A stretch of DNA of 64,000 nucleotides from Syncephalis fuscata S228 (GCA_025786725.1 JAHLTZ010000015.1:310001-374000); one strand, 5' to 3'; positions 30,802 through 55,620 are shown, counted from the first letter of the stretch. Notes: a model not told the origin generated them from the sequence alone. A program made the numbers and translations.

Positions 30802-32009
30802 ATAATACGCTAATAATTGTGTAAAATAGTAGTTTTTTGCCAGCCATGACTTATATAACTAAAATGCAGCAAATCATTGCCAAATTCGAGTTTCCGTGCT
30901 TAGTTATACAGATTGGCATGATTTATAAAACATTGATTTTTGCAAAAAAAACGGACCAAAAATGCGATTTACGTACTATTAATTTACTTAGTAAGGCATT
31001 ACAATGATCGTGTATACCTTTACGTATAATGAAGCAAACTGCATGACATTTTGTACAAGTATACTTATAATACATAGGTAGCTATTGACAAAGTATACTG
31101 TAATCGTATTGAGTGATAGAGCAATGGCTGTGATGATATGCTAATAATTGTGTAAAAATAGCAGTTTTTACTATTCATGGCCTATATAGCTAAGATGCAG
31201 CAAAATGATTGTCGAATTCGAGTTCTCCATGCTTAGCTGTATCGTTTGATATAATTTATAGAACAATGATTTTGTAACAAAAGTTAGTCAAAAGTGCGAT
31301 TTGCGTGTAAATAGTTAATGAAAAGTAATTACATTACATAATTCTAAAGATCTTAACATCAAATGTGAAATCTAATTTAAGTAAATTCAAGGCACTCTAC
31401 AATACTAAACAAACATAATAGTAAGTTAATATGCAGAAATATCAATGTATATTAGCAAGTTACACCATCTATATACATATGCGTAAGTTTTCATTAACTA
31501 TTTACACGCAAATCGCACTTTTGACTAACTTTTGTTACAAAAATCATTGTTTTATAAATTATATCAAACGATACAGCTAAGCATGGAGAACTCGAATCCA
31601 GCAATCATTTTGCTGCATCTTAGCTATATAGGTCATGAATAGTAAAAAACTGCTATTTTTACACAATTATTAGCATGTCATCACAGCCATTGCTCCATCA
31701 CTCAATACATTACAGTATACTTTGTCAATAGCTACCTATGTATTATAAGTATACTTGTACAAAATGTCATGCAGTTTGCTTATTATACGTAAAGGTATAC
31801 ACGATCATTGTAATGCCTTACTAAGTAAATTAATAGCACGTAAATCGCATTTTTGGTCTTTTTTTTTGCAAAAATCAATGTTTTATAAATCATGCCAATC
31901 TGTATAACTAAGCATGGAAAACTCGAATTTGGCAATGATTTGCTGATTTTAGTTATATAAGTCATGGCTGGCAAAAAACTACTATTTTACACAATTATTA
32001 GCGTATTAT
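30802..32009. mobile_element. Foldback-like element: about 520 bp inverted repeats around a 160 bp spacer
   Basis: 30802-31324 is a near-exact reverse complement of 31488-32009. Each arm contains a diverged internal repeat (units start near 30806 and 31137). Confidence 0.85.
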
Positions 32010-32691
32010 CTTTATTGCTCCATCATCAATACAATAACACCATATTTTACCAGTAGCTACCTATATGTTATTTACACACTTGTGCAAAATGCCATACAAT
32101 TTGCTTTGTTATACGTGAAGTTATATATAGTTTCAGTAGCGCCTTATTGCTTAAATTATTACTATTAGTTTTGATATTGCTTTTTATCACTTAATTACAC
32201 CAAATTACTTTTTAATATTGATGCATAATGTCATAGAATTGGCACAATAATTTGATTAGTAAGGTTTTAGTAATAGTCACAAAAATAGCTTATTCGTTAA
32301 AATAAAAATATATTAAACAATACATATAAATACGAAATAGCGCTTTATTTTGTTTCTACTACAACACTTTCACAAGTTTTAATATTAATCACAACGCCTG
32401 TTAACAAATCATTTATTGCGACAAAATTGGTTGTTCAATACATTAAGATCTCACATAGTTATTATTGGCAATGCCCATGTTTTACATGCCTTCAAGCTAT
32501 ATTTAACTGCAAATAAAACAATAGCATTATTCTTTGCATTGTAATAGACATACGTAATTGCGTAACAATATTAATGTAAAGAGCATAAAGCAACACATGA
32601 CCATGCAACACCCTTGTATTTATATGAGCATCTGCTAATATTTATCATGTTTATCCCGTATCAATCCTAGCGCAATTATTTCTATTTAACT

Positions 32692-34663
32692 ATGTCTTTG
32701 GGTACTAGCAGCAAAAGCTTATGGCAAAACCATGGCACTTTGGTGTATTTGTGCCGCTTTATAAATGGTCAAGAACTAGCGCTGTTTGCCACTAGCTGTC
32801 GGTTTGTCTATGGAATAATAGTTAAGCAACCTGATCATTGGGAACGCCAGTATAGACAAACATTTTGTCTGGGTGACAGGCGTGAACAGGAATGGCTTGC
32901 ATGGTATAACTTGTGCATCAGTATTACAGCGAAATTGAAAGAATCAACACTCAATGCAAATAAGAAAAAGCAAAAATGTTCATTATCACCCACCTATGGT
33001 TTTAATTCCACTCGGTGATTATATGCTTATCAGCGACGTCAACAAACTAATCACAACTTTATTACAGGTCAATTCAAAAACGGACGTGCCAAATTCCAGT
33101 TATTGAACCTAATTATTTGAGTTTAATCAATGTAAATCCATGATATGCATTGGCACAAGACAAATTGATATCAAGGATTTGCACAATTCAACATAATAGC
33201 TTTAGCAGGGAAAACAAACAAAGCAACAATAAATTAACTTGGAAATAGTTGGCTTTTTATCAATCGTTATATCTATTTAATGGCAGAATTAGAATCAACT
33301 CTGTCCATAATGCAAATCAATTTGTTGTGGCATACGTTTCTATATGTACATATGATGATGTGGTACTGTCATTCCTGGAGATCTGATAGGTAACTAATAA
33401 TTGTTAACACAGCTTAATACATCAGCTATTTATTAATTATATTAAAATAGTAAATATCGCTGAAATGGAAGTACAATACATCAGAGAAAACAAAGCTAAA
33501 GTCCGTGCTTCTACATCCGCAGAGAGGCCACAAAGCCATATGAGAAATGGCATAGTAGTATGGAATTATACCGACAATTCATCTCCCAATATTGTTTATT
33601 TTCAGCGCACAAATAATCACTGGACAGGCCAGATCAACCTAATTTAATCGAGACTTATCACAATTGGATGCTATTAAAAACTAATAACCGACATGATTCA
33701 TAACAACAATCTGACTTATTTAATTTAAGTAGAAACCGATGGATAAAAGGTCCAAGAATACACAACTGTAATTCAGGTGCATCTATCATATCCGCTTCTC
33801 AAACCCAATGTCAATTCTTAGTACAAAAAATAATGACCGGGTTTATAAAAACTGGCAATATCCCTACATTCATTCCTACTCAGAATTCTCAAGATATTGA
33901 GAGTGATAATCGAACAATGCGTACCAAATGGAAGATATTTGATGCGCAAAGGGATCGGAATCAATGTGAGAGGATATCGTCTGGTGAAATCATTATTCCA
34001 TACTGTTCGGCTGCTATAATTAATGTTGAGTTGTATACAGGAAATATATGCTTGTTTACTGTATACCGTGTAACAAATAATCCATGCCTTATTCACCACA
34101 GAATATATGAAGCTTCATTGTAGTTGCTTGCATTTGGCAAGTTTGCACCAAACGATTTGCTACAATCAATATTTGACGCCAGAGATTACGGCCATTTACT
34201 TCCCATTGATAGTTCTGATAAAGGACATTTATTCTGGACTCAGCCTATACGTAACATTGATATTACAAAACTATATAGTGAAAAGCTTATCGCTGTTTAG
34301 AAGCTTGGTACATTGGATGTGTTGAGTGCTTTAAATGAAGATTTATTGCGGTCAGTCACTTGTTCGCCTCATTACGTAAAGCTTACTCCATTCCTCGGAT
34401 TTTTATGCAAAATTGTTGGCAAAAAATACAGAAAATATTGGTTTATTGACATGCACACTAGTCGTGTATATAATCCATCGAACTGTTTTACTAGAGAACA
34501 AAATGGAAATGACAAAGAAGCCAAGCCTTTAGGTCTTGTTGAAACAACGCTACAAGATATAAAAAAGCATAGAAGAATAAGCGCTGACTATTTATTATCA
34601 AACGTCGTTATTGGCCAAATCAATTCAAACAAAAACGGTTTATATGAAGTATACATGTTATAA
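32692..34663 (+). pseudogene. Decayed F-box-like protein gene
   Basis: F-box-like N-terminus LVYLCRFINGQELALFATSCRFVYGII..HWERQY, then in-frame TGA in TR*LYAYQRRQQTNHNFITG, further stops and frameshifts, with fragmented ORFs to 34663. Confidence 0.65.
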
Positions 34664-36127
34664 ATAAAAGACTAATTGAAAATACTTGATAAAAATAACT
34701 TAAATATCATTTATATTAAATATTTACAACATTTATATTTATCTGAAGTAATTTAATGGATAAATACGCATATTTTTACATTAACTTATAATCAAACGGC
34801 TGACAACAGCATTATTCAAATCTAATGCTTTATTATTAATAGCGCTATCACACAACAAGCAATAATTAATGACAGAGATTGATTGATAGCGATGGTGCTT
34901 GTATCAATAGTTGATACTACAGCGTTAGAAATAAATCACACATTTCTGTGGCTAAATTGCAATGTCAAGTAAAATAAACACGCAAATCAATTAGTATATT
35001 TATGATATAGAAAGTGCGGTATTGTACATTAATTATCTATATATTAAAAATATTATATAAATTCATGCATTTAATACTTTGTATTAGCAGTTGGTAAATG
35101 CCATTGTATATCAATTGGCCATATAATAAACATATACTATACATTGTGCATGTGTTCAATAACATTTAATAATAGACGGCAAGTAAAGTTATAAAATACT
35201 AACTTATACGCTAATTACATGGTAGTTTACATATGCATTTATAAACATAGAATAGCTTGTGCATTCAAGACATTGGAATTACCAGCATGGTTAGATTACT
35301 ACTCCAATATACTTTAAGTATATACTCAACAAAAACCAAAACTATTTGACAAGTAAATCATTTAGTCTATTTATCTATCAAGCTCCAGTCAATGCTCCGG
35401 TTTGTTTAACTCTTAATCGCTGGTCTCATTATATTAGCAGCAGGTCTGCACTTGTTTGTACATGCTCGGTTATGCAGACGTTTAGTAACAAACATTTAAT
35501 CTGCTATATTTATATCTATATTTATTTATGTACAATGTTTTACAGAAATTAAACAAAAATAAGCATGTTAATATTAGACTTTTACAGGAATGCTGCTTTG
35601 ATTACTAGCATAAATTGACATAATTCTAATCATATTTATTTGCAAGTAGCAATTTTATATGTAATTATTGTAGCAATATGTGTTGGCAATATAATCAACT
35701 GTATTTGTTTATGCACTGGTATAAGTCATGATGCTACTAAAAGGATATGGTAACAACAATAAACATATATATTTGTTTAAGATAATCCTAAAGTGGGCTA
35801 AATAGGTTAGCTTTTGTTACTAGTGACAGAAATGGACAATTGTATATTGGCAGTATCTATATTCAGAATAAAGCACTAGAAATGATAAAGTACTGTTCTT
35901 TATATCATGATGTAGAAATGGTGATATATTAAGTATCATTAAATATTACTATAACAGTTTGTAATATTATACTAGAGCTAAATAGTCCTCAAATAAAATG
36001 ACTGTTTTGTAGTATGTGGGAGATAACTCTAGTATGCCTTTACGTGCTGCATTCTATTAGCTGTTGACTACTTATGTTTATTAGAAATTTACATAGATTT
36101 TGGCAATAGGTTTATGTTTAAATATTT

Positions 36128-37081
36128 TTAGCAAATTATATTTAGCAAAACATTATGATGCCGTTGATGAAGTTTTGCTGCTCCCTTTAACACCGCAATG
36201 ATAAACTAAAACAGTTGATGTAATACACCTAACATACGATTAGTAGTATGTCAGTCAATTTGTCTAGTTACATACCAATCTATAACAAAAAACATTTGTG
36301 AATATGAATCGCCTACTTTGAATAAAATGCAAAATGCGCAAGTAATATTGCAAAACACTACTAAACACATGATTTGAATACCGTTACGTGTCAGTCGTCT
36401 CCATGCTTCTGAGCCAAATGTCTTATACTGTTGATATGCAATATAGCTAAATATTCCTGAGAACAGTATATTGACAGGTATAGTAACACCAAACCAGTAT
36501 AAAGGCATTGAGATAGGGTAGTTGGCAACACAACCACCATGCTTTTCGAATGTAATATAAGATACGGTTATAACAAACGGTGTAAATCCTAACTGTGGTA
36601 ATATAAGAATGATACCAACAACCAAAACCCAGCGTTGTTTTAAAAGCACAATATACGCTTTCTGCAGTATGACTATACTGTTGCCTATGCTTACAACTGA
36701 AAATGCAGTAAGAATATACCAAATTGTTTCACGACAATTTAGAATTTCGAAAAAATACGGAACTACAATAACAAACCAGCCGGCGCCAAACAAACTAGAT
36801 ATTAAGAAGCACCACCCAGAAAGAAATTGTGGCCGATTTAAAACCATGCGGATTGAGATCGCAAGGTTTGATATAAATATTAGTGATGCGAGAATATTAA
36901 TAATCATTTGAGTATAAATGGCAAACAATCGAGCTTGAGCGTCATGTCTATCATTTGGCACTGCTGCTATAAAACTGTATAAAGGCGCTTCGCCAGACGG
37001 ATGAAGCGGAATATCCCACAGCCGTGTAGCATTGTGTCTCCAGTCCATGTCATTGTTTACAAGGTTTTGAGTAGTGCCCAT
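36128..37081 (-). CDS. 7TM GPCR-like receptor, copy A (intact)
   Basis: Seven hydrophobic segments, NAT sequon, Cys at the top of TM3 and in ECL2, one intron after FFVIDW, last exon CITSTVLVYHC...IIC*. Confidence 0.85.
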
Positions 37082-37717
37082 GTCTATGACTGCTTAGATA
37101 TACAAATGTAATTTAAAATGGGGGTTGGCTGATGAACGATAAAGAAATAGGGGATATTGAAAATAAGTAGGCGTGAATGATAAATCTACCGGCTGTCGGT
37201 TCCGCATTGCGCGTATGTACATACTATGCTAATAAACCTGTTTACTTGCATATCAATACTATGCTGTTACACACAAACTCACCTTTGCATGCTAAATCGC
37301 TCTTTAAAATAATTTACACGTAACACCATGTTAAATTTACAGCTTTGGACAATTGGCATTTGCTAGCTATATTGAATTAGCATGTTTTTGCTTGATGCTG
37401 AATTTCATTATACTATGTTTTACATTTCTGTTTAAAACATACTACTTTAGTAAACAACTGGTATTAAATGCGCTAAACTGTTTAATGTATTCGGTCTTGT
37501 CGAATATTTAATTTATAAAGTACGTCTAAAACTGGTCTATTATGCATTTATATAAATTGCAGCTTATATTTATGTTTTACATCCGACTAAATTCCGAATC
37601 AAATAAACACCTTTTTAGTATGTTAAACTCAAGTTAGTATGTATTTACACGTTGCAATTTACTCATTGATGACTATTATAATTATAATAGCGCAACACCA
37701 AGTAGTATGTTTGCAAT

Positions 37718-37973
37718 TTATTTTGTTAAAACGGTATAGATATAAATTACAAGATTTGTATACATAAAGTTTCCAAAACTAATACAAATGGCTAACACCA
37801 AATAAGCGCTAAATAGCCGAGTTCGAATGACTTTCATGTCATCTGATATCGCTGTTACAAAGTCATACATATACAATTCACCGGATGGATGGAATGAAAT
37901 ACTCTATTCTTGTACAGCACTTTGTTTTTAATCCAAACTGGTATATTCAAAACAACTTTAGGATAGCAAACAT
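37718..37973 (-). pseudogene. Truncated N-terminal remnant of the same 7TM family
   Basis: LD*KQSAVQE*SISFHPSGELYMYDFVTAISDDMKVIRTRLFSAY aligns with MDWRHNATRLWGIPLHPSGE...RLFSAY. Confidence 0.8.
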
Positions 37974-38354
37974 TGATTAGAAGTTTAATAGATGTATTAA
38001 ATAAAACTACAGGCTTAGTCAAAGCTAAGCATAGCAAATAGAATAAGATAAGAGTGCCTATATACACATGATTGCCTATTGTTTAATAAAGTATATTTGG
38101 TTGATTTTGCTTCGACTCCCACATTTGGAGTCCCCATAGTAAATTCGTTCCAATTGAAGTCAATTGTAACAAAGTGGCTGCAGGATGGTCACTTTATTAC
38201 ATTGATGCTGTTATGCATAACAAAATGCATTTATAATGTTTTCATTTGATTACTTTAAAATTCACAAGGCCAATTATTATTGCTGTTGACCATGCGTAGA
38301 AAGTTTGATTGAATATTAATAAAAACCATTGATCGCGATTCCATATCGTTCCAC

Positions 38355-38843
38355 AGTTGTTGTTGTTATTACTACGTACAGTGTGTTTTCTTGCGTCTGA
38401 ATGGTCTCTTCTATTTTCCAATCTTCTACTGTTGCGTTGTGGGCATATTTGCGATGTAAGATACTCATCTATGGTGACAAGAAGATAGAATGACTAGCGT
38501 TTCTGATGTTCACCATTGTCTTGAGCATTCTTGGTATTAACTTGTAGACGCAGATGCTTTGCCGACCATTGATGAAGCAAATCTACCTCCATCATACGCA
38601 ATAATGATAGGTTGAGTGTATTCACCAGGAAGATCGTGGCGACAGTTGTAACCAAAATATACGGCATGCCGTTGAGGTTACTTGACCAGGTGTTGATGTA
38701 AAATAAGAAAAATAAAGACTAGGGATTGAATAGTGTTTTTTATTTATGTTCAAATACGCATGCTATTTATATTGTTATATTTAACATTATCGTATAATAT
38801 ATTATTGAATAGAATATTCAAAAAGAAGATAAGACGATAAGAT
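38355..38843 (+). repeat. Direct repeat copy 1 (near-identical to 42400-42884), member of the dispersed repeat family
   Basis: About 490 bp with only a few differences. Weaker similarity extends at least 150 bp left and some distance right. Confidence 0.9.
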
Positions 38844-40503
38844 AACAATAAGAAAAAGTAATGAAATAAGTAAACAAAAAATGTAGGAGTCAAGGTAAAA
38901 TGATTTGATCATGTAAATATTACGCGCTCAATCCAATGTTTTGTTTTATTTTAATATACAATTATACGACTTTTATTAATGATCAATAAATGAAATTAAT
39001 CTGTCTTTCAATTGTTGCAATAATGTATAATATTAGCTGCTTACATTGATAAATAATTAGATTAAGCCTTATACTAGTTGTTTTAGTTGATGATCATGTA
39101 AATGTAAGTATATAAGAAGTTACAATGTGCTTGTAAATATTTATCTGTACAAACAGCCAGAATTATAAGTTATAGTAACAATAATAAGTATTTAATTACT
39201 AAACTTGTCAATTCAATTTTATCTACAACTCTTTGTTTTCTGTGCGCTATCTCAATTTAACGTTGCTGCTGTTCTAGCTGCATCAGCAACAGCCAACTTT
39301 TTGATAAACGTAGTCTAGCTTAGCATAGGTATAATGATTTGTTATAGGTCAAACCAGTAATCCTTTGAGCTGCTAATTGTTTTTCTATTGGTTTCTGCTT
39401 TGGCTTGTTCTTCTATATTCCATCTTGCTTAACTTGTCAAAAGTGGTTTCATAAATGTAAGCATCACTTAGGCCTTGGATAATTACCGGTTGATATACGA
39501 TCCATTGACATTATGCACTCGAAATTGCTGACATTCAATTGGAACTTTCTATTGTGTCTAGTCCAGTGTCTGCATATTGCATCGCGTGTAGTTTGGCCAA
39601 TGCAATTTAGTCTACAGCTAAAAACTGATGGCGAAAATGACTTGCTGAAATATTCCATTGCTCAAATGTCGTGATGCATCATGCTACAAACAGTACTTAT
39701 TGTATAGTTGCTTTTAGGTAATTTGGATTAGCCGTCATTTGAATGATGGTAGTTGCACATGTGGCATGATATACCTTGATGTGATGCATTTGTGAATTCA
39801 GAACAATTACTACCCCATAACAATGGGCATAGTATTGAATGAAATGCACCCATAAAACCAGTCAGCACACTTTATAATTTGAAAACTACAACTGACTTAC
39901 GTATAGCAGTAAAAACCTGTATAAAAATACCAGTTTAATATATTAAACCTGTTTTTGCATCATTGTTGTGCACTACTTTGTATGATGCAGATATTGGGGA
40001 CTGAGTCATTCAGGGAACTGACAACAAAGACGTCTTTGTCTTGTTTACAAAACTAAACAATATGCTTGTTTTTACCAAATAGTTAGACCATATAACAAAG
40101 AATACAGACTAATATATCTATTTTTATCGCATATGTACTGGGTTATTAGCGTTGTTCCATTATTTGTGCGAATGACTAGCAGATTGGAGTAAAGGCCGGG
40201 CAGATTGAAATCAAGACCGGGAGCATTCTATCATGCCATAGATTTATGGGTACATGTGCACCTCAAACCATTGTTTGGATTGCTTTATTGGCCCATGTTA
40301 CACATCAATGGTATGTATCGTATACTACAGTATACTGGCATCTCAGCATAATCATAAGTTTAAATAGCCCACAGAATATACACATCCAACTGCGGTATCC
40401 TCATCACGCTCTACTCTCTGCTAAACACACTCTACTCTCCACTTTATACCAATTACACTCTACTATCTCTTTTATTTGTTTGTCTTAACAAGTCAATATC
40501 ACC

Positions 40504-40701
40504 ATGAAGCTTTCCATTGCCGTCATTTGCACCATCGTTGTGGCTTTGATAGCCACCACAGCTATGGTGGATGCTAAGCCAGCCTTAGTTCGTCGTGGTG
40601 GCAAAAGCCCTCAATGCACCAGCTGCATGGCTACTAAATGCAAAAAAGGCATGAATGCTAGCATTTGCAACGACATTTGCAAAAAGGAATGCAGCGCATA
40701 A
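40504..40701 (+). CDS. Small secreted cysteine-rich cationic peptide precursor
   Basis: Signal peptide MKLSIAVICTIVVALIATTAMVDA, short pro-segment ending RR, then 34 aa with 6 Cys and 6 Lys. ACCATG start context. Confidence 0.85.
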   Translation: MKLSIAVICTIVVALIATTAMVDAKPALVRRGGKSPQCTSCMATKCKKGMNASICNDICKKECSA

Positions 40702-42399
40702 TCAATGGCTACAATACATTAGCATTGGTAGTGTAATCAAGCCACTATTTCAATACACTTTAGATATATATTCAGTGAAAAGCAAAACCATTTGACAATT
40801 ACGCCGTCCAGTCTATCTATATAGCAAGTTTTTGCCAATGCTTCGGTTTATCCAGTCTTTAATCAATGGAATCATTATTTTAGCAACAAGTTTGCATCTA
40901 TTTGCCCCTATTCAACTGTGCAAGCTTATAATAATAAATCTATGGTTTCATCTTAACTATATACAATCAAATTGCTATATCTATAACCATGTTCTATTTG
41001 CATTCAATAATGACAACTATCAATCAAATAGTTAAATTAATAACAAAATGTGTATAGTTATATCGCCTAAGCTATAGGCATAGATTGGTATGAATAGTAG
41101 CAAAGCTATCATTATCATATAGCCAAATAATAGTATGCTGAAATTAGAATAAATTCGCATTTTAATAAAACATGGCAATAAAGCATACGATATTATAAAA
41201 CAAAATAAATAGACAAAACGAATACGTGAATAGTAATAAAAAAACTATACTGTATGCAATTAGTCAATAGCAATAAACGAAATAAATCAAGATCTGCTAA
41301 AAGAATACAGTTAGCAATAAACTTTTAGCTTCTATTAATATAATTTCTACAATTTACAATATTAATGCTATAGACGGACATATAGTATGTGTATACAAGA
41401 CAGATATGTACAGTACAATAATAATGATAAATAAATAGCTTGATAACCAATGACACTCAACAGCCAGTTTCATCTTCAATAAAGCGGATACTTCATTTAA
41501 ATGTGTGGCTATTATAGCTATTTAACTGCCAAATCACACTAAACAACCAATAGCGTGCTTAATATTGTGGAAAAAGTTATTTTTATTTAGTTAATAAAAA
41601 TACCATAAGATTTAATACAAATCAAGTGGTTTAAATGATCCGTCACAGCACCCTTTTAAGCTTCTTTCGCCATGTTCTACAACTCTTTTAAATTAGAACA
41701 TTGGAGCGACTACTGCGACATTTAAAATGAACGTTACGAGTAGATTGTTCTAGTTTATCAATGACAAATGTCATGTTGACGGTTTTATTTTGCACATCTT
41801 CACTCTTGTTTGATACACCAACTAATTAATTTAAGTTGATCAAAGCAATAACACTTTTATGTAATTCGGAGTTATTTAATTGCTATATCTGATATTCAAA
41901 ATGCTCTAAATCAATCTAATCTTATTTGTTGGTTAGATTTAAATCTAAAATATTTATTAATTAAACAATTTTTGTTTGCATTACACTTTATTTATTTTGA
42001 TAGTTGCTTCATTAGTAGTTTGTATTTATTCAATAAAAACGTTTATTTTAGCACCAACCACTGTTTCAACACAATTGGTGCTAATCTTTACATAGCATGT
42101 TTTTGTATTGTATTTTGAGTTGCATTTGCCACAAATATATTGTTAAAAGTCTTTTAACAAATAAAACATGATTAGCTCTTCAAATTCCCCTATTTTGCCT
42201 TGAAATTCATATTTTGAGTCCTCAAAGCAAAATTGGCTTCAATTGAAAACATGCTGTTATGTACAAGAAACATAGTTACAATATTTTCATTTACTTTCTT
42301 TGAAATATTGAGGACAATCGTTATTATTGTTGACCATGTGTAGAAAGATTGATTGAATATTGATAGAAGCTATATGGTTGCAATTCCACATTGTTCCGC

Positions 42400-42884
42400 A
42401 GTTGTTGTTATTACTACGTACAGTGTGTTTTCTTGCGTCTGAATGGTCTCTTCTATTTTCCAATCTTCTACTGTTGCGTTGTGGGCATATTTGCGATGTA
42501 AGATACTCATCTATGGTGACAAGAAGATAGAATGACTAGCGTTTCTGATGTTCACCATTGTCTTGAGCATTCTTGGTATTAACTTGTAGACGCAGATGCT
42601 TTGCCGACCATTGATGAAGCAAATCTACCTCCATCATACGCAATAATGATAGGTTGAGTGTATTCACCAGGAAGATCGTGGCGACAGTTGTAACCAAAAT
42701 ATACGGCATGCCGTTGAGGTTACTTGAACAGGTGTTGATGTAAAATAAGAAAAATAAAGACTAGGGATTGAATAGTGTTTTTATTGATGTTCAAATACGC
42801 ATGCTATTTATATTGTTATATTTAACATTATCGTATAATATATTATTGAATAGAATATTCAAAAAGAAGATAAGACGATAAGAT
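42400..42884 (+). repeat. Direct repeat copy 2 (near-identical to 38355-38843)
   Basis: Direct comparison of the two segments. Confidence 0.9.
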
Positions 42885-43512
42885 AGCGATATGAAAAAGG
42901 CAGTCAAATGGATAAATAAAAATATGAAAGTTAAAGTGAAGAAGCTCCCTTTATTTAATAATTAATAAATAGACTCATGTAATCCAGTGTCAAAAGACTA
43001 AAACTGACATGATTAAACTGCACATTTGTTATTCTACTAAACATGGAACTGGGTGATGAGTAACATTAAATATCAAATTATACTGCTTTAAATACTTTAC
43101 AACAATAATAATATGGATTAACATTTATTTATTACTATCATTTACCTATTCATTATATTTTATTGTAAGTAACATGAAATACTGTTTAACATTTATTAAC
43201 ACTAATATCAAATATTAAAAATAGTGTAGATTAATTAAGATTTTGATTGATTTAAACAGAGTTGATATGACATTGCTTTGACAAATAACGCATCTTAATA
43301 GTAAAAACTGATTGACGGTTTATTTAAATTATGGGGGTTTCTGTCCTTCAGTTTAAGGATAAGGTATCAAAGTAAAATATATCTGTTTATTTAATACTTC
43401 TAATTATACTAACTGTCACTAATTTTACTCAAATAATTTGTACTAAACTATTAAACTAATTTTTTAATTTATTGCAATTATATTTGTTATATAGCAATGA
43501 GACATACACTCT

Positions 43513-45245
43513 TCACATTCTTTCTAACGGCGATATACCTAGTTGATAAATGGTATTTTTCAATATTAGTTCACAGGTGCTTAGTAGGTAAACTCGAGGA
43601 AAAGCAATATGTGCTGAATAGTTTTTTACACGTAAAGCATCGCAAACTTTCATTGTTGCTCTGGAAAGCCTTACTGCGAATGCTACAAGTAGGCATGGCT
43701 CACGACGTTCAAGCGCTACTTTTGCAACTTGTTCATAGTCAATTATCTCGCGTGCTACCTCGACTGCCGCATGAGCTGTTGACAAATGATGAGCGTATGT
43801 TTTATAGTCTGCATCGGTTAACAAACTGCTATCAAAAGAGTAATCGGCCGAATGAGCATCTAAAATAGCACATAGCTTTGCTCGAGTATAAAGTATATAA
43901 ACCATTGGCTGTCCTTTTTCCAATAATAGTTAGGTAGATCCTCAAGCAATCGAATGTATTTTTGTCGCTTTGTTTCCATAAAAAGACCTGCGAAAGTGGC
44001 GGCTGTTGTGGTATTAACAATTGTTGAATCCAATAAATGACACTTTGTGTTTTCGTTTAATTTTGTACTTGACCGATTAACTCTATCAACATCATCATCG
44101 GTGAGTCGATTAGCCGACATGCGTTGCATAGTTGACTGTATATAGGCGATAGACTTATCAATTGAATAATCAACAACCTTTTTCCTGTACTGTATTGGTC
44201 CTACAGGAATATACTCTAAATCAATCTGCGTATACAGCAACCTATCTCTAGCAGATAGTACCTTTAGCAAAGCATGTACTTGCTGTATTCGCATCTGGTA
44301 AGTCTCCGGTGCAATAACTAATAATTTTGTTGAGTTATCGTTATTTTCAGATGTTGTTCGTAATAGTGCTGCTGCCATATCGAGTAATAAACCAGTAGAA
44401 TCATGTACATCCGATACTAGTGGTAATAGTAAACGATTAGCACCAAAGGATATTAAATCCAATAAGCATGTATTGTTTTCTGAATTGATTGTCGCAATAT
44501 CCAATATTGTAATTGTCTTTTAAGTGCTGCTTGTTCGTCCAAAGAAGCTACACGTATTTCATCAGGCTCTAGACCAATTGATTTTAAATGGCGCATAACC
44601 AATGATATATTATCTAGTCGCATATTAATAACAGTTACCAGGCAGCAAATAGCTTACCAGTTGGCGAGGCAGGTAATAATAGTAGCCAATGGACTCTAGT
44701 ACCGTTGGATCGCATCATATTTACAATGCTTTGTGCTATTAGCTGTGCCCTTATTGGAGCATCCACGACTGGCGTAAACGCAGTCATAGAAGCTACTGGC
44801 CATTCAAGCACGGAAAGAGCTAATGTTGGCGCTTCTTTACTTTGACAGGTGTCAACTGGATGGATTAGACTTTGCTTTACCGCAATGCCAGCATTAGCAT
44901 GGCCACAGATTGCAGACGGACATATAATGATGTGCCCACTCGCGATAAAGCGGCAACGGTATCCGTCGCTACAAACTAGCAGATCGATATGCTTTCAGTT
45001 ATTATTGGATCAATTGGTTTCAGTACTTACCTTATTGAGCTGACTATCGAGCTCGGGTAAGGATGTCGTCTCTACCAGATTATGTAACGATAGCTTTATC
45101 TCACCACATTTGTTGTGCCATTGAAGTTGAATAGCTTTTTCTATCGTTTCAATTGAAAGGCTTTTCTGAAGACTATATAGCAATTCCACTTGTTGGCAAG
45201 CACCGGATATAACATCACAAGCTGTGCTTTTTGGCTTTCAAGCAT
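43513..45245 (-). CDS. Arginyl-tRNA-synthetase-like protein with DALR anticodon-binding domain and degenerate catalytic domain (DALRD3-like)
   Basis: GQPMVYILYTRAKLCAI, EPCLLVAFAVRL and LGISPLERM* match the ArgRS C-terminus. The HIGH region is replaced by EWPVASMTAFTPVVDAPIRAQLIAQSI. Several 1-bp frameshifts and two introns. Confidence 0.72.
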
Positions 45246-45330
45246 TGTAATTGAATTCGAAAGAATGTTTACTTTTAATTTTTTTGTCTAGTTGCTCTAC
45301 TATTTATTTTTGTTGTTGACAGCACCTACT

Positions 45331-46158
45331 ATGGAGTCATTCCGTTTATCTATGTTGCCTATGGGCACAGCATATTATATACCTAATTTTATTACCGAGC
45401 AAGAAGAAGAATCGCTACTCAAACAGGTACGAGTACTGTATGAGCTGAATGCAATAACACGATATTAACAACACAACAGGTCTACGCGGCACCAAAGCCC
45501 AAATGGGTAACACTTTCAAATAGACGTTTACAAAACTGGGGAAAGTATATTAACTTTTGAAGAATAGTAATAGCAAACTAAACGTACTTAACGTGTAGGT
45601 GGAATACCCGCCACAGAGGCATGCTGGTTGAACCGCTGCCTGACTGGCTTCAATGGCCATTACAGCGTATGGAAGAACAGCAGCTATCGGTATTTCCGAC
45701 AGATGCTCCAGCTAATCATTGTTTAGTTAACGAATACCTTGCCGGTCAAGGGATCATGGTAAGTAATCTATCAGTGGTAACAATAACGCTTTAACTTTAA
45801 TAAGCCACACGAAGATGGTCCAATGTATCTTCCATGTGTGGCTACACTGTCTCTAAATTCACATACTGTATTGGATTTCATACATCGAAATAATGATCAA
45901 GAACAACACGCAAGCTTTTCACTACTATTAGAACCGCGTAGTCTTTTTATTCAGCAAGACCAAGTTTATAAAGAGTATATGCACGGCATTAGCGAAACCA
46001 CCACTGATAATCTATCGGATGAACGTACATCAGCTCCATTATTACTGCCAGTGCCCGAACACTATCGTCATGACCAGATGGAGCGTAATACACGCGTTTC
46101 TCTTACCTATCGACGTGTAGCTAAATGTATTCGCGCACCTGCATTTTTACGCCATTAA
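45331..46158 (+). CDS. ALKBH6: AlkB-family 2OG-Fe(II) dioxygenase, ALKBH6-like
   Basis: YYIPNFITEQEE, APKPKWVTLSNRRLQNWG, NHCLVNEYLAGQGIM/PHEDGP, YMHGI, RNTRVSLTYR. Confidence 0.88.
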
Positions 46159-46243
46159 TTCGCAACACTATTACAAACACTAACGTTGGCTATAATGCCT
46201 ATACTATTTTTAATAAAATTGGATGATAATTAAAAAAGCCTTG

Positions 46244-47102
46244 TTATTGCGTAGGCTTATTTGGCGCTGCTTCTCCTAGCATGGCTCGTATCTGTGATCG
46301 CCGTGGCTGGAATGGCATGCCCAATCCACTAAGCAGTAAACGAGCTTCCCAGTTGGTTTGAGCGGTTGTAATGAAATTGATCTCAAAGCCAGATAGTCGA
46401 GGAATTCGATCGTATACTTCTTCGATCTCCGGAAATAGACCCATTACGTGCGAAGGAAAACCGAGTGCAATATTGCCTAGACCATCTCCACTGCCACCAC
46501 GAAGTACACGCCATTCTTTGATACGTGGCAATACAATTTCAGTCAATGTCTCAACAAAACTGTACATCTTTTCGCCACGTAGTTCTACTTTACAGCCAAA
46601 GGGCATGCCTTCACGTAGATGCCACGGTGCAGCATTTGACTTTGAATAAATTGTTTCTGGTTGTTGGCCGTAATGCAGCGCATAGCCGTAAATGTCGACA
46701 ATAGCGTGTATTTGTTATGCACCGCGTCCTTTGTCTGGCAGTGCACGATAACGCGTTCAAGCTCCGGCTGACTGGTATGCGTCTGTGGACGACGTTCCGG
46801 ATGCTTTGGACGAACACCACGTCGCTTAGGCGTCTCTCCAATCGTGTAGGCGGCATTACGTTTAGGCTTTGGTTCCGGTTCTAATGCGGTTGCTGCTTCC
46901 TTTGCCTGTTCAAGTTTTGCTTTTTCTTCCGCCAGATCCGCCTCGTGTTGATAAGTCAATACAAGCAGATCCTCGCGTAGCATGACGTGTAGTAATCGTG
47001 AAAACGCGAGAAAGACGTGGCGTGAGGTAGGGTCGAGATGCTGCGAAGTGCAGTGCCCGTTAGACGCGGCGACACAACTGCGCGTAAGTGATTCAACGCC
47101 AT
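46244..47102 (-). CDS. MRPL7: Mitochondrial large-subunit ribosomal protein uL5m
   Basis: Basic presequence, REDLLVLTY, PELERVIVH, GCKVELRGEKMYSFVETLTEIVLPRIKEW, EARLLLSGLGMPF. Frameshifts near 46985 and 46655. Confidence 0.9.
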
Positions 47103-47172
47103 GATCTAGCGAGAAAAAAATAAAGATTACAAAAATGTTAGCGCAAATGATGTGCAGATTAATTTGGTTAAC

Positions 47173-47720
47173 ATTTACTTTAACCCCCAGGGTAGTAAAT
47201 TTTTTTACGCAATCAATTACAACGATTTAAATAGTTGACGAGTCGATTGGATTAATTGTGTTTAAATCGTATTTATAATAAATGTTAATGTAATATAGCA
47301 ACATTATCATTTCCATAAAATACAATTAAATGTAACAGAACATTGTATTAGTAATAATTTAGCATTTAAATAAACAATGTAACATACTATTTGATTTCAT
47401 TGAAACATTTGAGGCTAATTATTGTCGTTGTTGCATATGTAGAAAGATTGATAAATATTAATAAAGCCGTATGTTATATTCCATGTCATTCCGCATTTAC
47501 TGTTATTGCATCTACATACACATGGATTTTGATCTAATGGTGTCTTTTATTTTACAATATGCTACTATTGCATTTTGGGCATATCTGTGATGTAAGATTA
47601 ATATTAATACAATTATTATAAAACTATGCAGTATGAATACTGCTTTAAATTATTCATAATAACAAGTTGATGTAAAAATAGAGAACAAAATGTAATAATA
47701 AATGAAACAGAAAGAGACGC
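47173..47720 (+). mobile_element. Copy of the dispersed repeat family with a hairpin-bearing terminus
   Basis: Begins ATTTACTTTAACCCCCAGGGTAGTAAAT, matching the reverse complement of 21240-21268. The body matches the 20, 38 and 42 kb copies. The right boundary is approximate. Confidence 0.7.
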
Positions 47721-48008
47721 AAAAGAAGAAGAAAAGGATCTATCACAAATAATAGAGATCACTAGAATACAAAAAGATAAGTTATTGCTTACATTTTATT
47801 ATTGTAGTTTCGCAGCAATAGCATATTCCATCATACGAACTACACTATAAAGCATGTTTTATATATTTGATAACAAGACTAGCTATTGCTGGCAGTTTTA
47901 ATACACACTGATCACTAAAAAGCTATTGATATAATATAACTAACTTAAAATCATTTCAGCATAGTGCCCTAATATTCAAATACAAGTTTGCATAATAGCC
48001 AGACTTTG

Positions 48009-48026
48009 TATGCAAGTAAACAGGTT
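48009..48026 (+). promoter_or_regulatory. Conserved upstream motif TATGCAAGTAAACAGGTT (forkhead-like core GTAAACA); representative copy
   Basis: Also at 37235-37252 (minus), 49545-49561, 50954-50971, 52733-52750 (variant) and 54498-54515, each about 150-165 bp before a receptor ATG. Confidence 0.7.
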
Positions 48027-48179
48027 ACTTGCATGTACGTTTTCACGTGTATATTTGGAATCATTAGCCAGCAGATTTATCCGCCAAAACTCTTTCTCAA
48101 TCATACTCCCATTGTTTTATCACCTTTTATCAGTTCAGCTTTATATAACATATGTACATTTAATCAATGTATTGCAACC

Positions 48180-49120
48180 ATGAACACTACTCAAAGTTTT
48201 CTACAAGATGACATGGGCTGGGAGCACAATGCTACACGGCTATGGGGTATTCCACTTCATCCATCTGGCGAAATATACTTATACGACTTTATAACAGCAG
48301 CGCCGAATGATAGACATGACACTCAAGCTAAATTATTTAGCGCTTACTTTAAATTTTTATTAATATCTTTATAATGCTGATTTTTATATCAAACTTGTAG
48401 TTTCAATTTGCATGATTTAAACCGAGCCTACTCTTTTTCCGGGTGGTGCTGTTTAATACCTGCTTTTTTGGTATTAGTTGGTCTGCTTTTGTAGTTTTAT
48501 ATCTTTTTGAAATTTGAATTGCCGAGAAATAGTCTGGTATACTATTGCTGCGTTTACAGTATCAAGTGTAGCTAATAGTATGCTTGTGCTGCAAAAAACA
48601 TACATCGTTTTTTTAAAACAACGTTGGATTTTAGTTGTTGGTATTATTTGTATATTGCCTCAGTTGGGATTTATACCGTTTTCTATAACTGTAGTTTACG
48701 TCACACTCGAAAATACGGCGGTTGTTTTACTAATTATCCTAGCTCGGTGCCTTTATATGGTTCGGTGTTACCATACCTGTCAATGCACTGTTCTCGGGAG
48801 TATTTAGCTATGTAGCATATCAACATTATAAGACATTTGGATCAGAAGCATGGAGACGACTGACACGTAACGGTATTCAATCATGTGCTTAGTAGTGTTT
48901 TGCAATATCATTTGTGCAATATGCATTTTATTCAAAGTAGGCGATTCATATTCACAATGTTTTTTGTTATAGATTGGTAGTAACTAGACAAATTGATTGA
49001 CATACTACTAATCGTATGTTAGGTGTATTACATCAATGTTTTAGTTTATCATTGCGGTCTTAAAGGAGCAGCAAAACTTCATCAACGCATCATAATGTTT
49101 TGCTAAATATAATTTGCTAA
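48180..49120 (+). pseudogene. 7TM receptor copy B, multiple 1-bp frameshifts (pseudogene or assembly errors)
   Basis: MNTTQSFLQDDMGWEHNATRLWGIPLHPSGE start. The defects I can see are single-base deletions relative to paralogs. Confidence 0.6.
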
Positions 49121-49725
49121 AAATATTTAAACATAAACCTATTGCCAAATCTATGTAAATTTCTAATAAACATAAGTAGTCAACAGCTAATAGAATGCAA
49201 CATGTAAAGGCATACTAGAGTTATTTTCAACATATTACAAAACAGTCATTCTATTTGAGATTATTTAGTTGTAATATATATATATTATGATTTATGTGTT
49301 TGATAGCAAGTTTGGCTATTGTAAGCTGTTTTAGTGCGTGTAATGCTAATTGTTTATTAAATGAATATATACGGCAACAATATAGCACAGCATAATGAAA
49401 TTTAACTCTAGGCAGAACATACCATCTCAGTATAGTTAGTATACACCAATTACCAAAAGCTATCGATATAGAATAATAGCTTTTGATCATTTCGGCATAA
49501 CAATTTGTACTCAAGGACAAGTTTGCATAATAACTAGATTTCAAATGCAAGTAAACAGGTTATTACGTGCATTATGCATGTATTGTGCGTGCGCAGTTTG
49601 AGATTAGCAGCCAGCAAATTTATCTCTTAAAAGCCTTTCGATCATTAATATCCCCATTCACTTTATTATTCTCTATCAATTCACTTTTATATAATATATG
49701 TATATTTGATCAATATAGCGCAACC

Positions 49726-50695
49726 ATGAGCACTAATCAAAGTCTTGTACAGGATGACATAACTGGAGACACAATGCCACGCGATTATGGGGTGTTCCGC
49801 TTCATCCATCGGGTGAAACGCCTTTATACAACTTTATAACAGCAATGCCGAATGATAGACACGCCGTTCAAACTCGATTGTTCAGCATCTATGCCGCATT
49901 AGCTATTAGTATTTCTGCAGCACTAATAGTTATATCAAACTTTGCAACCTCAATTCGCATGGTTTTAAATCGGCCACAATTTCTTTCTGGATGGTGCTTC
50001 TTAATATCTGGCTTGTTTGGCACTGTCTGGTTCTTTTTCTTAGTTCTGTATTTTTTCGAGATTCTAAATTGCCGAGAAACGATTTGGTATATTCTTACTG
50101 CATTTTCAGTTGCAAGTGTGAGCAACAGTATAGTTGTACTGCAAAAGGCATATATTGTGCTTTTAAAACAACGCTGGGTTTTGGTTGTTGGTATCATTCT
50201 TATATTACCGCAGTTAGGATTTACACCGTTTGCTATAAGCATAGTTTATGTTACACTTGAAAAATATGGTGGCTGCATTGCTAATTACCCTATTTCAATG
50301 CCTTTATACTGGTTCGGTGCCACCATGCCTGTTAACACTCTATTTTCGGGAATATTCAGCTATGTGGCATATCAACAGTATAAAGCATTTGGTTCAGATG
50401 CATGGAAGAGACTGGCGCGTAATGGTATTCAAACTATGTGCCTAGTAGTGTTTTTAAATATTACCTGCGCAGTAGGAACTTTATTTAAATTAGGCGATTC
50501 GTATTCACAAATGTTTTTTGTCTTAGATTGGTAAGAGGTTACGCAAATTGCTTGACATTTTACTAATTACGTACTAGGTGTGTTACATCAACCATTTTAG
50601 TTAATCACTGTAATTCGGCGAAAAACCATAAAACGTCATCAGCAGCATTAAACTACTCACCTTTTCTTAATTCAAAAAAAGACACCCAGGTATAA
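49726..50695 (+). CDS. 7TM receptor copy C (one 1-bp deletion near 49761)
   Basis: ORF 49845-50534 plus an upstream MSTNQSLVQDD start and a last exon CVTSTILVNHC...TQV*. Confidence 0.78.
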
Positions 50696-51126
50696 GCTGT
50701 TACAAATTTATACAGCTTTTTAATGTATATAAACAGCAAACACTAATTATTTATTTATTAAGTTAGTGTGTTTTGCAACAATAATATAAACTGTAGAATA
50801 ATGAGGTTTACTATCAAGCAAAAACATGCTAATCCAATATAATTAACAAATACCAAATGTCCAAAGCTGTAAATTTAACATGGTGTTACGTGTAAATTAT
50901 TTTTAAAAGCGGCTTAGCATACAGTGTAGCTTATGTGTTCAGCATGATATTTATATGCAAGTAAACAGGTTTACTCGCATAGTATGTACATACGCGCAAT
51001 GCGGAACCGACAGCCGGTAGATTTATCATTCACGCCTACTTATTTTCAATATCCCCTATTTCTTTATCGTTCATCAGCCAACCTTTACATTTTAAATTAC
51101 ATTTGTATATCTAAGCAGTCATAGAC

Positions 51127-52058
51127 ATGGGCACTACTCAAAACCTTGTAAACAATGACATGGACTGGAGACACAATGCTACACGGCTATGGGGTATTCC
51201 GCTTCATCCGTCTGGCGAAACGTACTCATATGATTTTTTAATAACAACGTCAAACGATAGACATGACGCTCAAGCTAGACTGTTTATAGTTTACGCTCAA
51301 GTTATTATCAATATTTTTATAGCAATCATGTTTGTGCCAAACTTTGTAATCTCAATTCGTATGGTTATAAATCGTCCATACTCTCTTTCTGGATGCTGCT
51401 GTCTAATACCTGCGTTAGCTGCTATTTTTTGGTATATTTTTATAGTTTTATATTTATTTCAAATTCTAAATTGCCGAGAAATAGTCTGGTATACTATTGC
51501 TGCGTTTACAGTATCAAGTGTAGCTAATAGTATGCTTGTGCTGCAAAAGGCATACATCGTTTTCTTAAAACAACGTTGGATTCTAGCTGTAGGCGTTTTG
51601 TTTATATTGCCTCAGTTGGGATTTATGCCATTTTCCATAAAATCAATTTATGCTAATTTTGAAAAAGACAATGGCTGCATTGTCCACTATTCCACTTCAA
51701 TGTCTTTATACTGGTTTGGCGTTACCATACCTGTAAACACATTTTTTTCGGGAATATTTAGTTGCATAGCATACCAACATTATAAAAAATTCGGATCAGC
51801 TGCATGGAAGCGATTGGCGCATAATGGTATTAAGACGATGTGTCTAGTAGTTTTTTGCAATATCATGTGTGCAGTATGCGTTTTATTTGAATTAGGCGGC
51901 TTATATTCACAGATGTTCTTTATTATAGATTGGTAAGTAATTAGACAGATTGATTGTTACGCTGCTAACTATGTTTTAGGTTCACTACGTCAACTATTTT
52001 GGTTAATCATTGCAGTGTGCTAAAAAAACGTATAACATTCTCGCATTATCTGACTTAA
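51127..52058 (+). CDS. 7TM receptor copy D (intact)
   Basis: 269-aa ORF, intron after IIDW, last exon FTTSTILVNHC...YLT*. Confidence 0.85.
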
Positions 52059-52906
52059 TAATAGTAAATCGTTAATAGCGGGAAGGATCGATGCTTTACT
52101 AAAGAATAGCAATTTTGTGCATATTTATATTGAAAGTATTCTGTTCGTTCATCTAAAGATGGTAATACCGTATATCATCTAGAGTCGGTGACCAATCGGG
52201 CTTTCAATTCAATTTGAGATAACATTGTTAACAATGCTATGATTTCCAACTACATTCAGTTTACAAAAAAGTGTCCAAATATGAATTCATTAAAATGCTG
52301 ATAAAATATTATATACTTATTAGTAGTCAAATTCAACCAATTGTAGTATTTAAACACATAATAAAATCTTTTTAATAGGTAAAAAATATTCACCCGATCC
52401 AGTATTCACTTATCATGATATATTATTCCAGCTTGTAATGTATATGTGCGTATAATATACTTATTATAGCTCCACATAATTAATTGCATTTTTAACAACA
52501 AGAGGCGCATTAAACAGTTTAATGCATGTAATACTGTTTGTTTACTAAATTGCTATACATGATAACAACATAATACACGTATAGTGATATTCGACTGTAA
52601 ATAGGCATGTTACTTTAATATAATTAGTACACGCAGATTATAAAAAACCACCAATATGGTATAATTAGGTTTAAATTGTCTCAACATAATATTTAATGTT
52701 TAAAGAAATGTCTGTATAATAACTGGATTCCATATGCAGATAAACAGGTTCTTACAGAAATTGTGCGTGTATTTATGCGTATGCAACGTGGAAATATTAG
52801 TGTACAGGTTTATCGTTCAAAAGACGTTAGTTTACGGATATTCCCATTTCTATCATTTTTATTAGCTTTTCTTTATATATGTACATTTAAGCAATATATT
52901 AAAACC

Positions 52907-53877
52907 ATGAACGCTACTCAAGATTTTGTACGGGATGATATAGACTGGAGGCACAATGCCACGCGATTGTGGAATGTGCCACTTCATCCATCGGGTGAAA
53001 TACTTTTATACAATTTTATAACAGCGGTGCCAAATGATATTCATACCACTCGTACTCGACTATTTACCATGTATGCCCAAATAGTTATTAATATGTTTAT
53101 AATGTCAATATTTATGCCAAATCTTGCAAAATCCATCCGCATGATTGCAAATCGACCACAATTTCTTTCCGGATGGTGCTGCTTGGTCCCTGCTTTATTT
53201 GGTGTTGGTTGGCTTGTTTACATATTTACGTATCTCTTTGAGAAGACATGTTGCCGAGAAGCAGTTTGGTTTGCGTTTACTGCATCTTCATTTTCAAGCG
53301 TCAGCAACAGTATAATTGTGTTACAAAAAGCATACATTGTTCTTTTAAAAAACCAATGGGTGGTTGCTGTCGGAATTTTGCTTATATTGCCGCAGCTGGG
53401 ATTTATACTGCTAGGTATAAAACTAACTTATGTTACCATGGACAATAGTGGCATGTGCCTTGCTCACTATTCTAGCTCGGTGCCTTTATACTGGTTCGGT
53501 GTTACTATACCTGTCAATATACTGTTCTCGGGAATATTCAGCTATGTGGCATATCAACAGTATAAGGCATTTGGCTCAGAAGCATGGAAAAGGCTGGCGC
53601 GTAATGGTATTCAAGTCATGTGTCTAGTAGTGTTTTGCAATATCATTTGTGCAATATGCGTTTTATTTAAAGTAGGCAATTCATATTCACAAATGTTTTT
53701 TGTTTTAGATTGGTAAGTGATTAAGCAAATTGATTGATATATTACTAATTGTATATTAGGTGTGTTACATCGACCATTTTGGTTAATCACTGTAGTTCAG
53801 TGAAAAACCGCAAAACACCATCAGAAACATTAAACTGCTCTGATAATTTTAATTCACAAGAAGACACTCAAGTATAG
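52907..53877 (+). CDS. 7TM receptor copy E (intact)
   Basis: ATG at 52907 (MNATQDFVRDDIDWRHNATRLW), intron after VLDW, last exon CVTSTILVNHC...TQV*. Confidence 0.85.
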
Positions 53878-54664
53878 GTTGTTAAAAATGTATACAGCTT
53901 TTTAATGTATATATAAATAACTAGCAACCAATAAGTTGTAGCGTCTTAACCACCAAACTAGATAAGAATAGAATAAGAATAAAAATTGATGTTTTATTAA
54001 AAGATGCACAATTATGTGTGTATTTATGTTGAGGTATACCACTCATGTACCACGGATATAAAAGTAAATTATGTGATTAAAGTGTATGGCTTGTAACAAC
54101 GCACGAAAGTAGTATGTAAATACATATTAATGTTATCTCTAATGTACAAAAAGTATTTATTTTATCCACAACTTAATTGTCATAATGTATTGCTGAAAAT
54201 TATAATGTATATATTTGTAATGTATTAGTTTTAGCATATGTCATAATTTATGTATTTTAAAACAATACTGGCTATTATGATCAATCTAGTACATGTAATA
54301 ATGTATACTAAATCAATATATACGGCAGCAATATAACACATGGCACAGCGAGGTTTAATGTCAAACAGAGCATGCTATTTCAGTATAGTTAGTATGCACA
54401 AATTATCAAAAGTTACCGATATAGAATAATAGATTTTGATTATTTTAGCATAAAAATTTAGTACTCAAGAACGAGTGCGCATGATAGCTAGATTGTTTAT
54501 GCAAGTAAACAGGTTATTGTGTGCATTGTGCGTGCGTAGTTTGAATCATTAGCCAGCAGATTTATCCGCCAAAACTCTTTCTCAATCATACTCCCATTGT
54601 TTTATCACCTTTTATCAGTTCAGCTTTATATAACATATGTACATTTAATCAATGTATTGCAACC

Positions 54665-55620
54665 ATGAACACTACTCAAAGTTTTCTACAAGATGACATG
54701 GGCTGGGAGCACAATGCTACACGGCTATGGGGTATTCTACTTCATTCATCTGGCGAAACGCCTTTATATAATTTATAACAGCAGCGCCGAATGATAGACA
54801 CACCGTTCAATTTTGCTTGTTTAACATTTATGCTCAAATATTTATTAATTTTTGTATAATGCTAGTATTTATTTCAAATCTTAAAAATGCAATTTGTATG
54901 ATTATAAATCAACCACAACTTCTTTCTGGGTAATGTTGTTTAATACCTACTTTATTTGGCGTTGGTTGGATTGTTTATGTAGTTACAGCTATTTTCGAAA
55001 AACAAATTGTTGAAAAGCAATTTGGTTTTTTTACTGTGTTTTCATTTTCAAGCGTCAGCAACAGTATAATTATGCTACAAAAAGCATACATTGTTTTTTT
55101 AAAAAAACTGATGGGTTATTATTGTTGAAATCCTGCTTATATTGCCACAGTTGAGACTTGCACCGCTCGCCATAATTGTAATTTATATTAAACTTGAAGA
55201 ACATGATGGTTACATTGCTCACTATTCTATTTCAATGCCTTTATACTGGTTCGGTGTTACTATACCTGTCAATATACTGTTCTCGGGAATATTCAGCTAT
55301 GTGGCATATCAACAGTATAAGGCATTTGGCTCAGAAGCATGGAAAAGGCTGGCGCGTAATGGTATTCAAGTCATGTGTCTAGTAGTGTTTTGCAATATCA
55401 TTTGTGCAATATGCGTTTTATTTAAAGTAGGCAATTCATATTCACAAATGTTTTTTGTTTTAGATTGGTAAGTGATTAAGCAAATTGATTGATATATTAC
55501 TAATTGTATATTAGGTGTAGTACATTAACTATTTTAGTTCATCATTGTATTTCGGTGAAAACTTGTAAAACTTCACATTCTGGAGTAAGTGAAAGGTTAA
55601 ACCTGCGCGCAGTGGTTTAA
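54665..55620 (+). pseudogene. 7TM receptor copy F, pseudogene
   Basis: Substitution-derived stops: TAA at the SGW Trp (54931), TGA at the CRE Arg (55011), TGA near 55109, plus frameshifts. Confidence 0.8.

Follow-up and report, generated by a model that had tools for sequence, protein, structure and literature searches.

Pseudogene-templated diversification is established for the V genes of chicken immunoglobulins (Ig) and for the mosaic variant surface glycoprotein (VSG) genes of trypanosomes. Interlocus gene conversion is reported for mammalian olfactory receptors, for plant NLR clusters and for fungal NLRs (e.g., PMC13449251, PMC6709784). A literature search for Syncephalis together with G-protein-coupled receptors (GPCRs) returned no paper, the papers on Syncephalis fuscata just listed its genome, and nothing specific was found on GPCR expansion in Zoopagomycota. 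Here we analyzed a 64,000-nt stretch of the genome of S. fuscata S228 (29.4 Mb in 371 contigs; GCA_025786725.1), referred to as the window (C57:310001-374000, i.e., JAHLTZ010000015.1), which carries a cluster of six GPCR-like genes (copies A to F). These copies were patchwork mosaics of one another, and a single history for all their segments was rejected. The closest named proteins were hypothetical proteins of Syncephalis fuscata with BDF19DRAFT locus tags, in agreement with the parasitic fungus suspected from the DNA alone; this species is a mycoparasite of the Zoopagales.

Like tandem chemoreceptor and immune-receptor families, the cluster showed short tracts between clustered paralogs, conflicting segment trees and a pseudogene in the array, and divergence went together with patchwise homogenization. 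Unlike those families, it belonged to a seven-transmembrane (7TM) family of Zoopagales without a name, carried by a mycoparasitic zygomycete. Mosaic genes composed of paralog segments and a pseudogene within the array were also shared with chicken Ig V genes and trypanosome VSGs. However, no sign of a pseudogene donor was seen here, there was no single expression site, and at least three copies (B, C and D) were transcribed from their own promoters. The process itself, conversion between tandem paralogs, is textbook; the new part is the unnamed receptor-like family, and no adaptive role was shown.

Five of the copies (B-F) were arranged in tandem at a spacing of 1.4-1.8 kb, and copy A was inverted and located 11 kb away. 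Each copy had an exon 1 of ~806 nt, a 47-nt GT..AG intron (46 nt in B as assembled) and a short exon 2. Together with a seventh copy, G, the genes were as follows (positions are those of the window unless a contig is named).

36153-37081, minus strand: copy A, ATG at 37081, open as assembled (from the open reading frame list and the alignment gene model)
37081-36276, 36275-36229 and 36228-36153, minus strand: exon 1, the intron (47 nt) and exon 2 of copy A
48180-49100, plus strand: copy B, ATG at 48180, expressed, with 14 one-base gaps in the assembly
49726-50695, plus strand: copy C, ATG at 49726, expressed and spliced, intron 50531-50577
51127-52058, plus strand: copy D, ATG at 51127, open, expressed and spliced, intron 51933-51979, identical to annotated protein P0003
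52907-53877, plus strand: copy E, ATG at 52907, open, identical to annotated protein P0002
54665-55620, plus strand: copy F, ATG at 54665, a true pseudogene with internal stops
C57:442366-443136: copy G, the twin of A, in which one one-base gap truncates annotated protein P0001

The initial annotation had counted six full-length paralogs. This held for A, D and E, which were open as assembled, but not for the assembled sequences of B (14 gaps), C (one gap) and F (true stops and indels).

The six units and copy G were aligned with MAFFT from ATG-420 to ATG+1250 and examined in a sliding-window scan. All seven block matches noticed by the initial annotation, which had described the array as a mosaic, were reproduced nearly to the base. 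Identity was 88-100% within the partner-specific blocks versus 60-75% for the same pairs elsewhere. The shared blocks were the following.

B 48058-48252 and F 54543-54737, plus strand: 195 nt without a single difference, spanning -122 to +73 from the ATG
E 53481-53763 and F 55236-55518, plus strand: 283 nt without a single difference, spanning the 3' end of exon 1, the intron and the beginning of exon 2
A 37253-36989 and D 50953-51219: 6 substitutions and 2 indel positions
B 48517-48630 and D 51469-51582, plus strand: 115 alignment columns with 3 substitutions (97%), in the region of transmembrane helix 3 (TM3)
A 36439-36023 and B 48815-49224: 14 substitutions and 7 one-base gaps in 420
A 36887-36569 and C 49919-50237: 88-98% identity from the end of TM1 to TM4, where C also resembled G
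C 49432-49487 and F 54385-54440: distal promoter, 89% identity, with 76-85% across about 150 nt

The A/D block covered the proximal promoter, the 5' untranslated region (UTR) and the N-terminus, and D also resembled G there, with 3 substitutions. The A/B block, in which B likewise resembled G, extended from TM6-TM7 through the intron and exon 2 into about 130 nt of 3' flank. Along copy A the best partner changed from D (37390-36988) to C (36887-36569), then to E/F (36528-36409) and finally to B (36448-36012). Block edges were sharp on both sides, and the B/D, B/F and E/F blocks were internal, flanked by diverged sequence of the same partner. The tracts included promoter, 5' UTR, the 47-nt intron and 3' flank besides coding sequence, showing that block identity was not due to protein-level constraint. 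The likeness of A and G to C appears to stem in part from common descent, because A/G and C were sisters in two of the segment trees (S2 and S3).

Polymorphic sites were permuted GENECONV-style (2000 permutations). The pairs AB, AC, AD, BD, BF and EF contained runs of 25-109 consecutive agreeing polymorphic sites, compared with a permuted global maximum of 29 and a mean of 13.7, and these six pairs reached a global p <= 0.001. The pairwise homoplasy index (PHI) test was run alongside; its statistic lay 45.7 standard deviations below the permuted mean (z = -45.7). Maximum-likelihood trees were built for five segments (S1-S5) and compared by approximately unbiased (AU) tests. The five trees were in conflict, with bootstrap values of 95-100%. 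The proximal promoter and N-terminus (S1) separated (A,G,D) from (B,F,E,C), the helix core (S2 and S3) gave (A,G,C), (B,D) and (E,F), and exon 2 with the 3' flank (S5) separated (A,G,B) from the rest. In the AU tests, every segment rejected the topologies in conflict with its own: the S1 data rejected all others at p < 0.001, and with the S3 data the trees of S1 and S5 were rejected at p < 1e-7. A single history for all segments was therefore rejected by the permutation, PHI and AU tests, which also settles whether one tree could fit all windows: the segment trees conflict and the alternatives are rejected.

The blocks differed in age, and a segmental duplication served as the internal clock.

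30794-38901: 8.2-kb segmental duplication carrying A, twin with G at C57:436784-444954, 96.5-97.7% identity by blastn

The duplication was direct, on the same contig and about 96 kb apart, and included A/G and neighbouring sequence; its two halves had diverged by 2.3-3.5%. Divergence as between A and G (2.3%) would leave about 4-7 differences in blocks of 195 and 283 nt. None was observed, indicating that the B/F and E/F tracts are probably younger than the A/G duplication. Blocks at 76-92% identity are older than these two tracts. Over 1.8 kb, 25 substitutions separated A from G. Five of these lay within 34 nt (alignment columns 1183-1216), where G read B/E/F-like and A C-like, and we take this patch to be a conversion that followed the duplication.

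Some of the junctions were supported by RNA. The RNA data were contigs from the one public run found to contain the sequence and were compared with copies B to E; these contigs skipped the 47-nt intron in C and D (splice joints 50529/50577 in C and 51931/51979 in D), showing that the run is real RNA; the C contigs spanned 49770-50529. A 450-nt contig matched B at 48102-48546 with 0 substitutions and bridged the right edge of the B/F block. The same contig ended 30 nt into the B/D block (48546), a D contig also ended 30 nt into this block (51498), and the next contig started at the block's first base, 51469. Such breaks are the pattern expected when B-specific and D-specific contexts merge at k = 31, the length at which Logan contigs are built. 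In D, RNA contigs bridged the right edges of both the A/D and the B/D block. Copy E was represented in the run by a single 151-nt contig of depth 2 with two differing letters.

The same contigs changed the status of B. As assembled, B had 14 one-base gaps relative to all other copies and no insertion, and many of the gaps lay in short homopolymer runs. The RNA contig added one letter at 48350, 48393, 48415, 48462 and 48514, i.e., at all five of the B gaps that it covered. When B's frame was read with only these five letters added, it was open for residues 1-124 and matched the family consensus. Since the covered gaps were filled and the frame reopened, B is probably an intact gene with errors in the assembly consensus. 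Insertional RNA editing was considered for the five extra letters and found far less likely than consensus error, because the gaps were all one-base deletions, many in short homopolymers, and one was also present in the B-like 3' flank. The one-base gaps of G and of C (after 49760, codon 12, in a part without RNA cover) may be errors of the same kind. Local one-base gaps in the public assembly make pseudogene calls based on frameshifts alone unreliable in this genome and family.

Copy F is the only demonstrable pseudogene among the copies. Its exon 1 contained two stop codons created by substitution, a one-base insertion and three deletions (two of 1 base, one of 2), and Tyr replaced the family-invariant Cys184. 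All seven defects fell within the 498 nt (54738-55235) between its two perfect blocks and none inside the blocks. On this pattern, F seems to have received sequence from B and E. The initial annotation had cast pseudogenes as donors; this was supported on neither count, as B's frame was restored by the RNA contig and the F blocks identical to B and E were defect-free. Among the private substitutions of F (54738-55235), 14 of 23 were G>A or C>T, two of which made the stop codons, and the bias in the other copies was opposite to this excess. The excess, for which a RIP-like process was also considered, fits neutral AT-biased decay in an AT-rich genome.

We consider the probable and best explanation of the mosaic to be ectopic gene conversion that recurred in short tracts between tandem and inverted paralogs, segmental gene conversion being one of the two processes proposed by the initial annotation (the other was unequal exchange): the tracts were two-edged, included non-coding sequence, differed in age and in some cases linked inverted copies 11-95 kb apart. 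The backbone lineages are (A,G,C), (B,D) and (E,F), in which stretches of about 80-420 bp would have been repeatedly overwritten with the sequence of another paralog. As to mechanism, we infer non-reciprocal homology-directed repair, i.e., ectopic gene conversion. In the resulting genes, one lineage would supply the promoter and the N-terminal ectodomain of the protein, a second its helix core and a third its C-terminal helices. The tracts fell alike on promoter and 5' UTR, on coding sequence and intron, and on the 3' flank, and so reflect a mutational process and are no footprint of selection.

Several observations weigh against this explanation. One genome was examined, and neither the direction nor the non-reciprocity of transfer can be read from it. 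Some of the junctions were seen in RNA contigs, and in the one run no such contig lay on the E/F block as carried by E or on the A/B 3' block as carried by B. The assembly was locally imperfect, with the five verified one-base gaps in B. Compared with the assembly, RNA contigs carried other letters at 2 sites in C, both of them resembling A/G, and at 6 sites in D. Five of the differing D letters lay within 96 nt (51094-51189; 5' UTR and first codons), inside the A/D block, and four of the D sites (51094-51119) matched none of the assembled copies. No extra D-like copy that would account for the six letters was found in the assembly; polishing error, an allele or a copy missing from the assembly may lie behind these D sites. 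Given these local flaws and the RNA mismatches in C and D, the exact tract edges are uncertain, as is an exchange between G and D after the duplication (a zero-difference G/D stretch).

Duplication history alone, in which unequal crossing-over in the array would have made single-breakpoint chimeras without gene conversion, is very unlikely. It would suit the tandem array with its 1.4-1.8 kb spacing, and some of the likeness was indeed long and one-sided, as in the whole 5' flank shared by A and D (76-98%) and in A and B from TM6 through the 3' flank. However, the B/D (115 nt), B/F (195 nt) and E/F (283 nt) blocks were internal and two-edged, and A and G differed in a 34-nt patch matching other copies. 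Moreover, simple unequal crossing-over is excluded for the blocks of A and G, which stand in the opposite orientation to B-F at a distance of 11-95 kb.

It is very unlikely that the blocks were made during consensus building or polishing, by reads of one paralog piled onto another. The consensus is locally poor: all five tested gaps of B were absent from RNA, and of the 8 sites at which RNA contigs disagreed with C and D as assembled, five lay inside the A/D block. However, across the B/F edge Illumina-type RNA contigs agreed with B (48102-48546) without a substitution, and contigs entered the B/D block from flanks specific to B as well as from flanks specific to D. Copies that diverge by 25-40% in the background are far too different for mis-mapped reads to create identity, and the older blocks at 76-92% cannot come from polishing. 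Similar blocks were also present in the family on other contigs.

The dN/dS ratio (nonsynonymous over synonymous substitution rate) among the intact copies A, C, D and E was 0.24-0.37, with 0.22-0.60 on the extracellular side; the copies are under purifying selection, and dN/dS gave no signal of positive selection among these four. Neither A, D, E nor any of 46 family members matched a Pfam family, including 7tm_1 (PF00001) and Ste2 (PF02116), and the family profile matched no chain among the PDB sequences. An AlphaFold (AF2) model of D had a predicted local distance difference test score (pLDDT) of 91 and a predicted template modelling score (pTM) of 0.87, with seven helices and a beta-hairpin in extracellular loop 2 (ECL2). 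In Foldseek, class A peptide GPCRs ranked on top for this model, with an E-value of about 1e-4 and a template modelling score of about 0.5. VIA-align gave GPCRs a Z of 14-17, with rhodopsins equal to them; designed GPCR folds, Ste2, class C receptors and microbial rhodopsins all scored 15-17, and designed 7TM folds did as well. The value for Ste2 (7ad3_B) was 15.8, and Ste2 was also a weak feature-space neighbour (0.83); the ESM Atlas neighbours were fungal 7TM proteins, DUF6533 and 7tm_1. The label "GPCR-like" in the initial annotation is thus borne out at the level of the modelled general fold only, and not by a match to a Pfam family.

The predicted proteins resembled class A GPCRs and Ste2 in the seven helices, the N-terminus placed outside in the model, the ECL2 beta-hairpin and the cysteines C116 and C184. 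C184 (ECL2) was invariant and C116 (top of TM3) nearly so, i.e., the TM3-ECL2 cysteine pair was present. They differed from class A GPCRs and Ste2 in having no sequence match to Pfam or PDB and no DRY or NPxxY. In place of these two motifs, the sequences had LQKAY where TM3 ends on the cytoplasmic side, and DWxxTSTILVxHC in TM7. Conservation within the family peaked on the cytoplasmic face formed by TM5, intracellular loop 3 (ICL3) and TM6, whose counterpart in variability was found at the extracellular ends of TM2 and TM4/ECL2, the most variable parts. This pattern suits a receptor and proves nothing, and the conserved cytoplasmic face may be a hint of G-protein coupling.

The family was large, with at least 143 six-frame matches in the 29.4-Mb genome and 206 representatives in a library of 1.84 billion proteins. 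Nine of the sampled representatives carried an organism name, in every case a Syncephalis species or Thamnocephalis, and the tenth was a record of the Joint Genome Institute (JGI). Going by the sequences seen so far, the family appears confined to mycoparasitic Zoopagales. A large undescribed 7TM family of this kind may reasonably be taken as a candidate sensor of host or environment. With the 8.2-kb duplication as its clock, the cluster is also a clean, statistically strong case of ectopic gene conversion in an early-diverging fungus.

Mosaic-like pairs were also found, less often, in other clusters of the family (2 of 91 in C361, 1 of 15 in C212 and 0 in C79, C301 and C306), compared with 6 of 15 in the A-F cluster. 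The latter is a hotspot, probably since its members are still similar enough to pair. We give little credence to the idea that selection maintains short-tract conversion at such hotspots and continually recombines promoter-plus-ectodomain, helix-core and tail modules into new host-sensing receptors, as a chemosensory counterpart to the mosaic gene families known from parasites; any benefit of this sort to the fungus would be conjectural. Least likely of all is selected diversification in the manner of chicken Ig V genes or trypanosome VSGs, with pseudogenes donating modules to expressed receptors and widening host sensing, a role that the initial annotation had suggested for a parasitic fungus: for all that conversion was unusually dense here, that the variable parts of the family face outward at TM2 and TM4/ECL2 with the TM5-ICL3-TM6 face conserved, and that the organism is an obligate mycoparasite, B is no demonstrated pseudogene, F looks like a recipient, dN/dS carries no positive-selection signal, promoter, intron and flank were hit as readily as ligand-facing parts, and any converting tandem family would give the same picture without selection.

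Beyond the clusters, no near-identical blocks were found among 24 dispersed family loci, whose copies were 64-72% alike save for whole-locus near-duplicates such as L008/L009 (99.3%). The genome of S. plumigaleata was considered as a source of an outgroup array and set aside: the closest homologue, P0004, lay at a non-syntenic locus with no adjoining family copy.

A motif with a forkhead-like GTAAACA core, ATGCAAGTAAACAGGTT, was present in all six copies at -158 to -173 from the ATG (A 37235-37251, B about 48010-48026, and the equivalent site in C-F), with copy E carrying the variant ATGCAGATAAACAGGTT. It was absent at the equivalent place in 24 other family loci. RNA contigs started at -78 in B and -76 in D, a hint that transcription begins some 85 nt downstream of the motif.

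One further family feature lay near copy A.

37721-37936, minus strand: relic N-terminal family fragment, found by tblastn, with 35-38% protein identity to residues 12-83

An inverted or palindromic repeat structure was seen around 30794-32161, in the 5' end of the 8.2-kb duplication. Between A and the tandem array, a 4-kb segment was flanked by direct repeats (38267-38899 and 42311-42940) that were up to 100% identical over 300 nt. The left repeat (38267-38899) lay at the edge of the duplication. Elsewhere in the genome, several family loci had whole-locus twins on other contigs at 97-99.3% identity: L008/L009 (C92/C307), L010/L012 (C361/C362), L025/L026 and L027/L028. Such twins stem either from recent segmental duplication or from haplotype contigs that were left uncollapsed.

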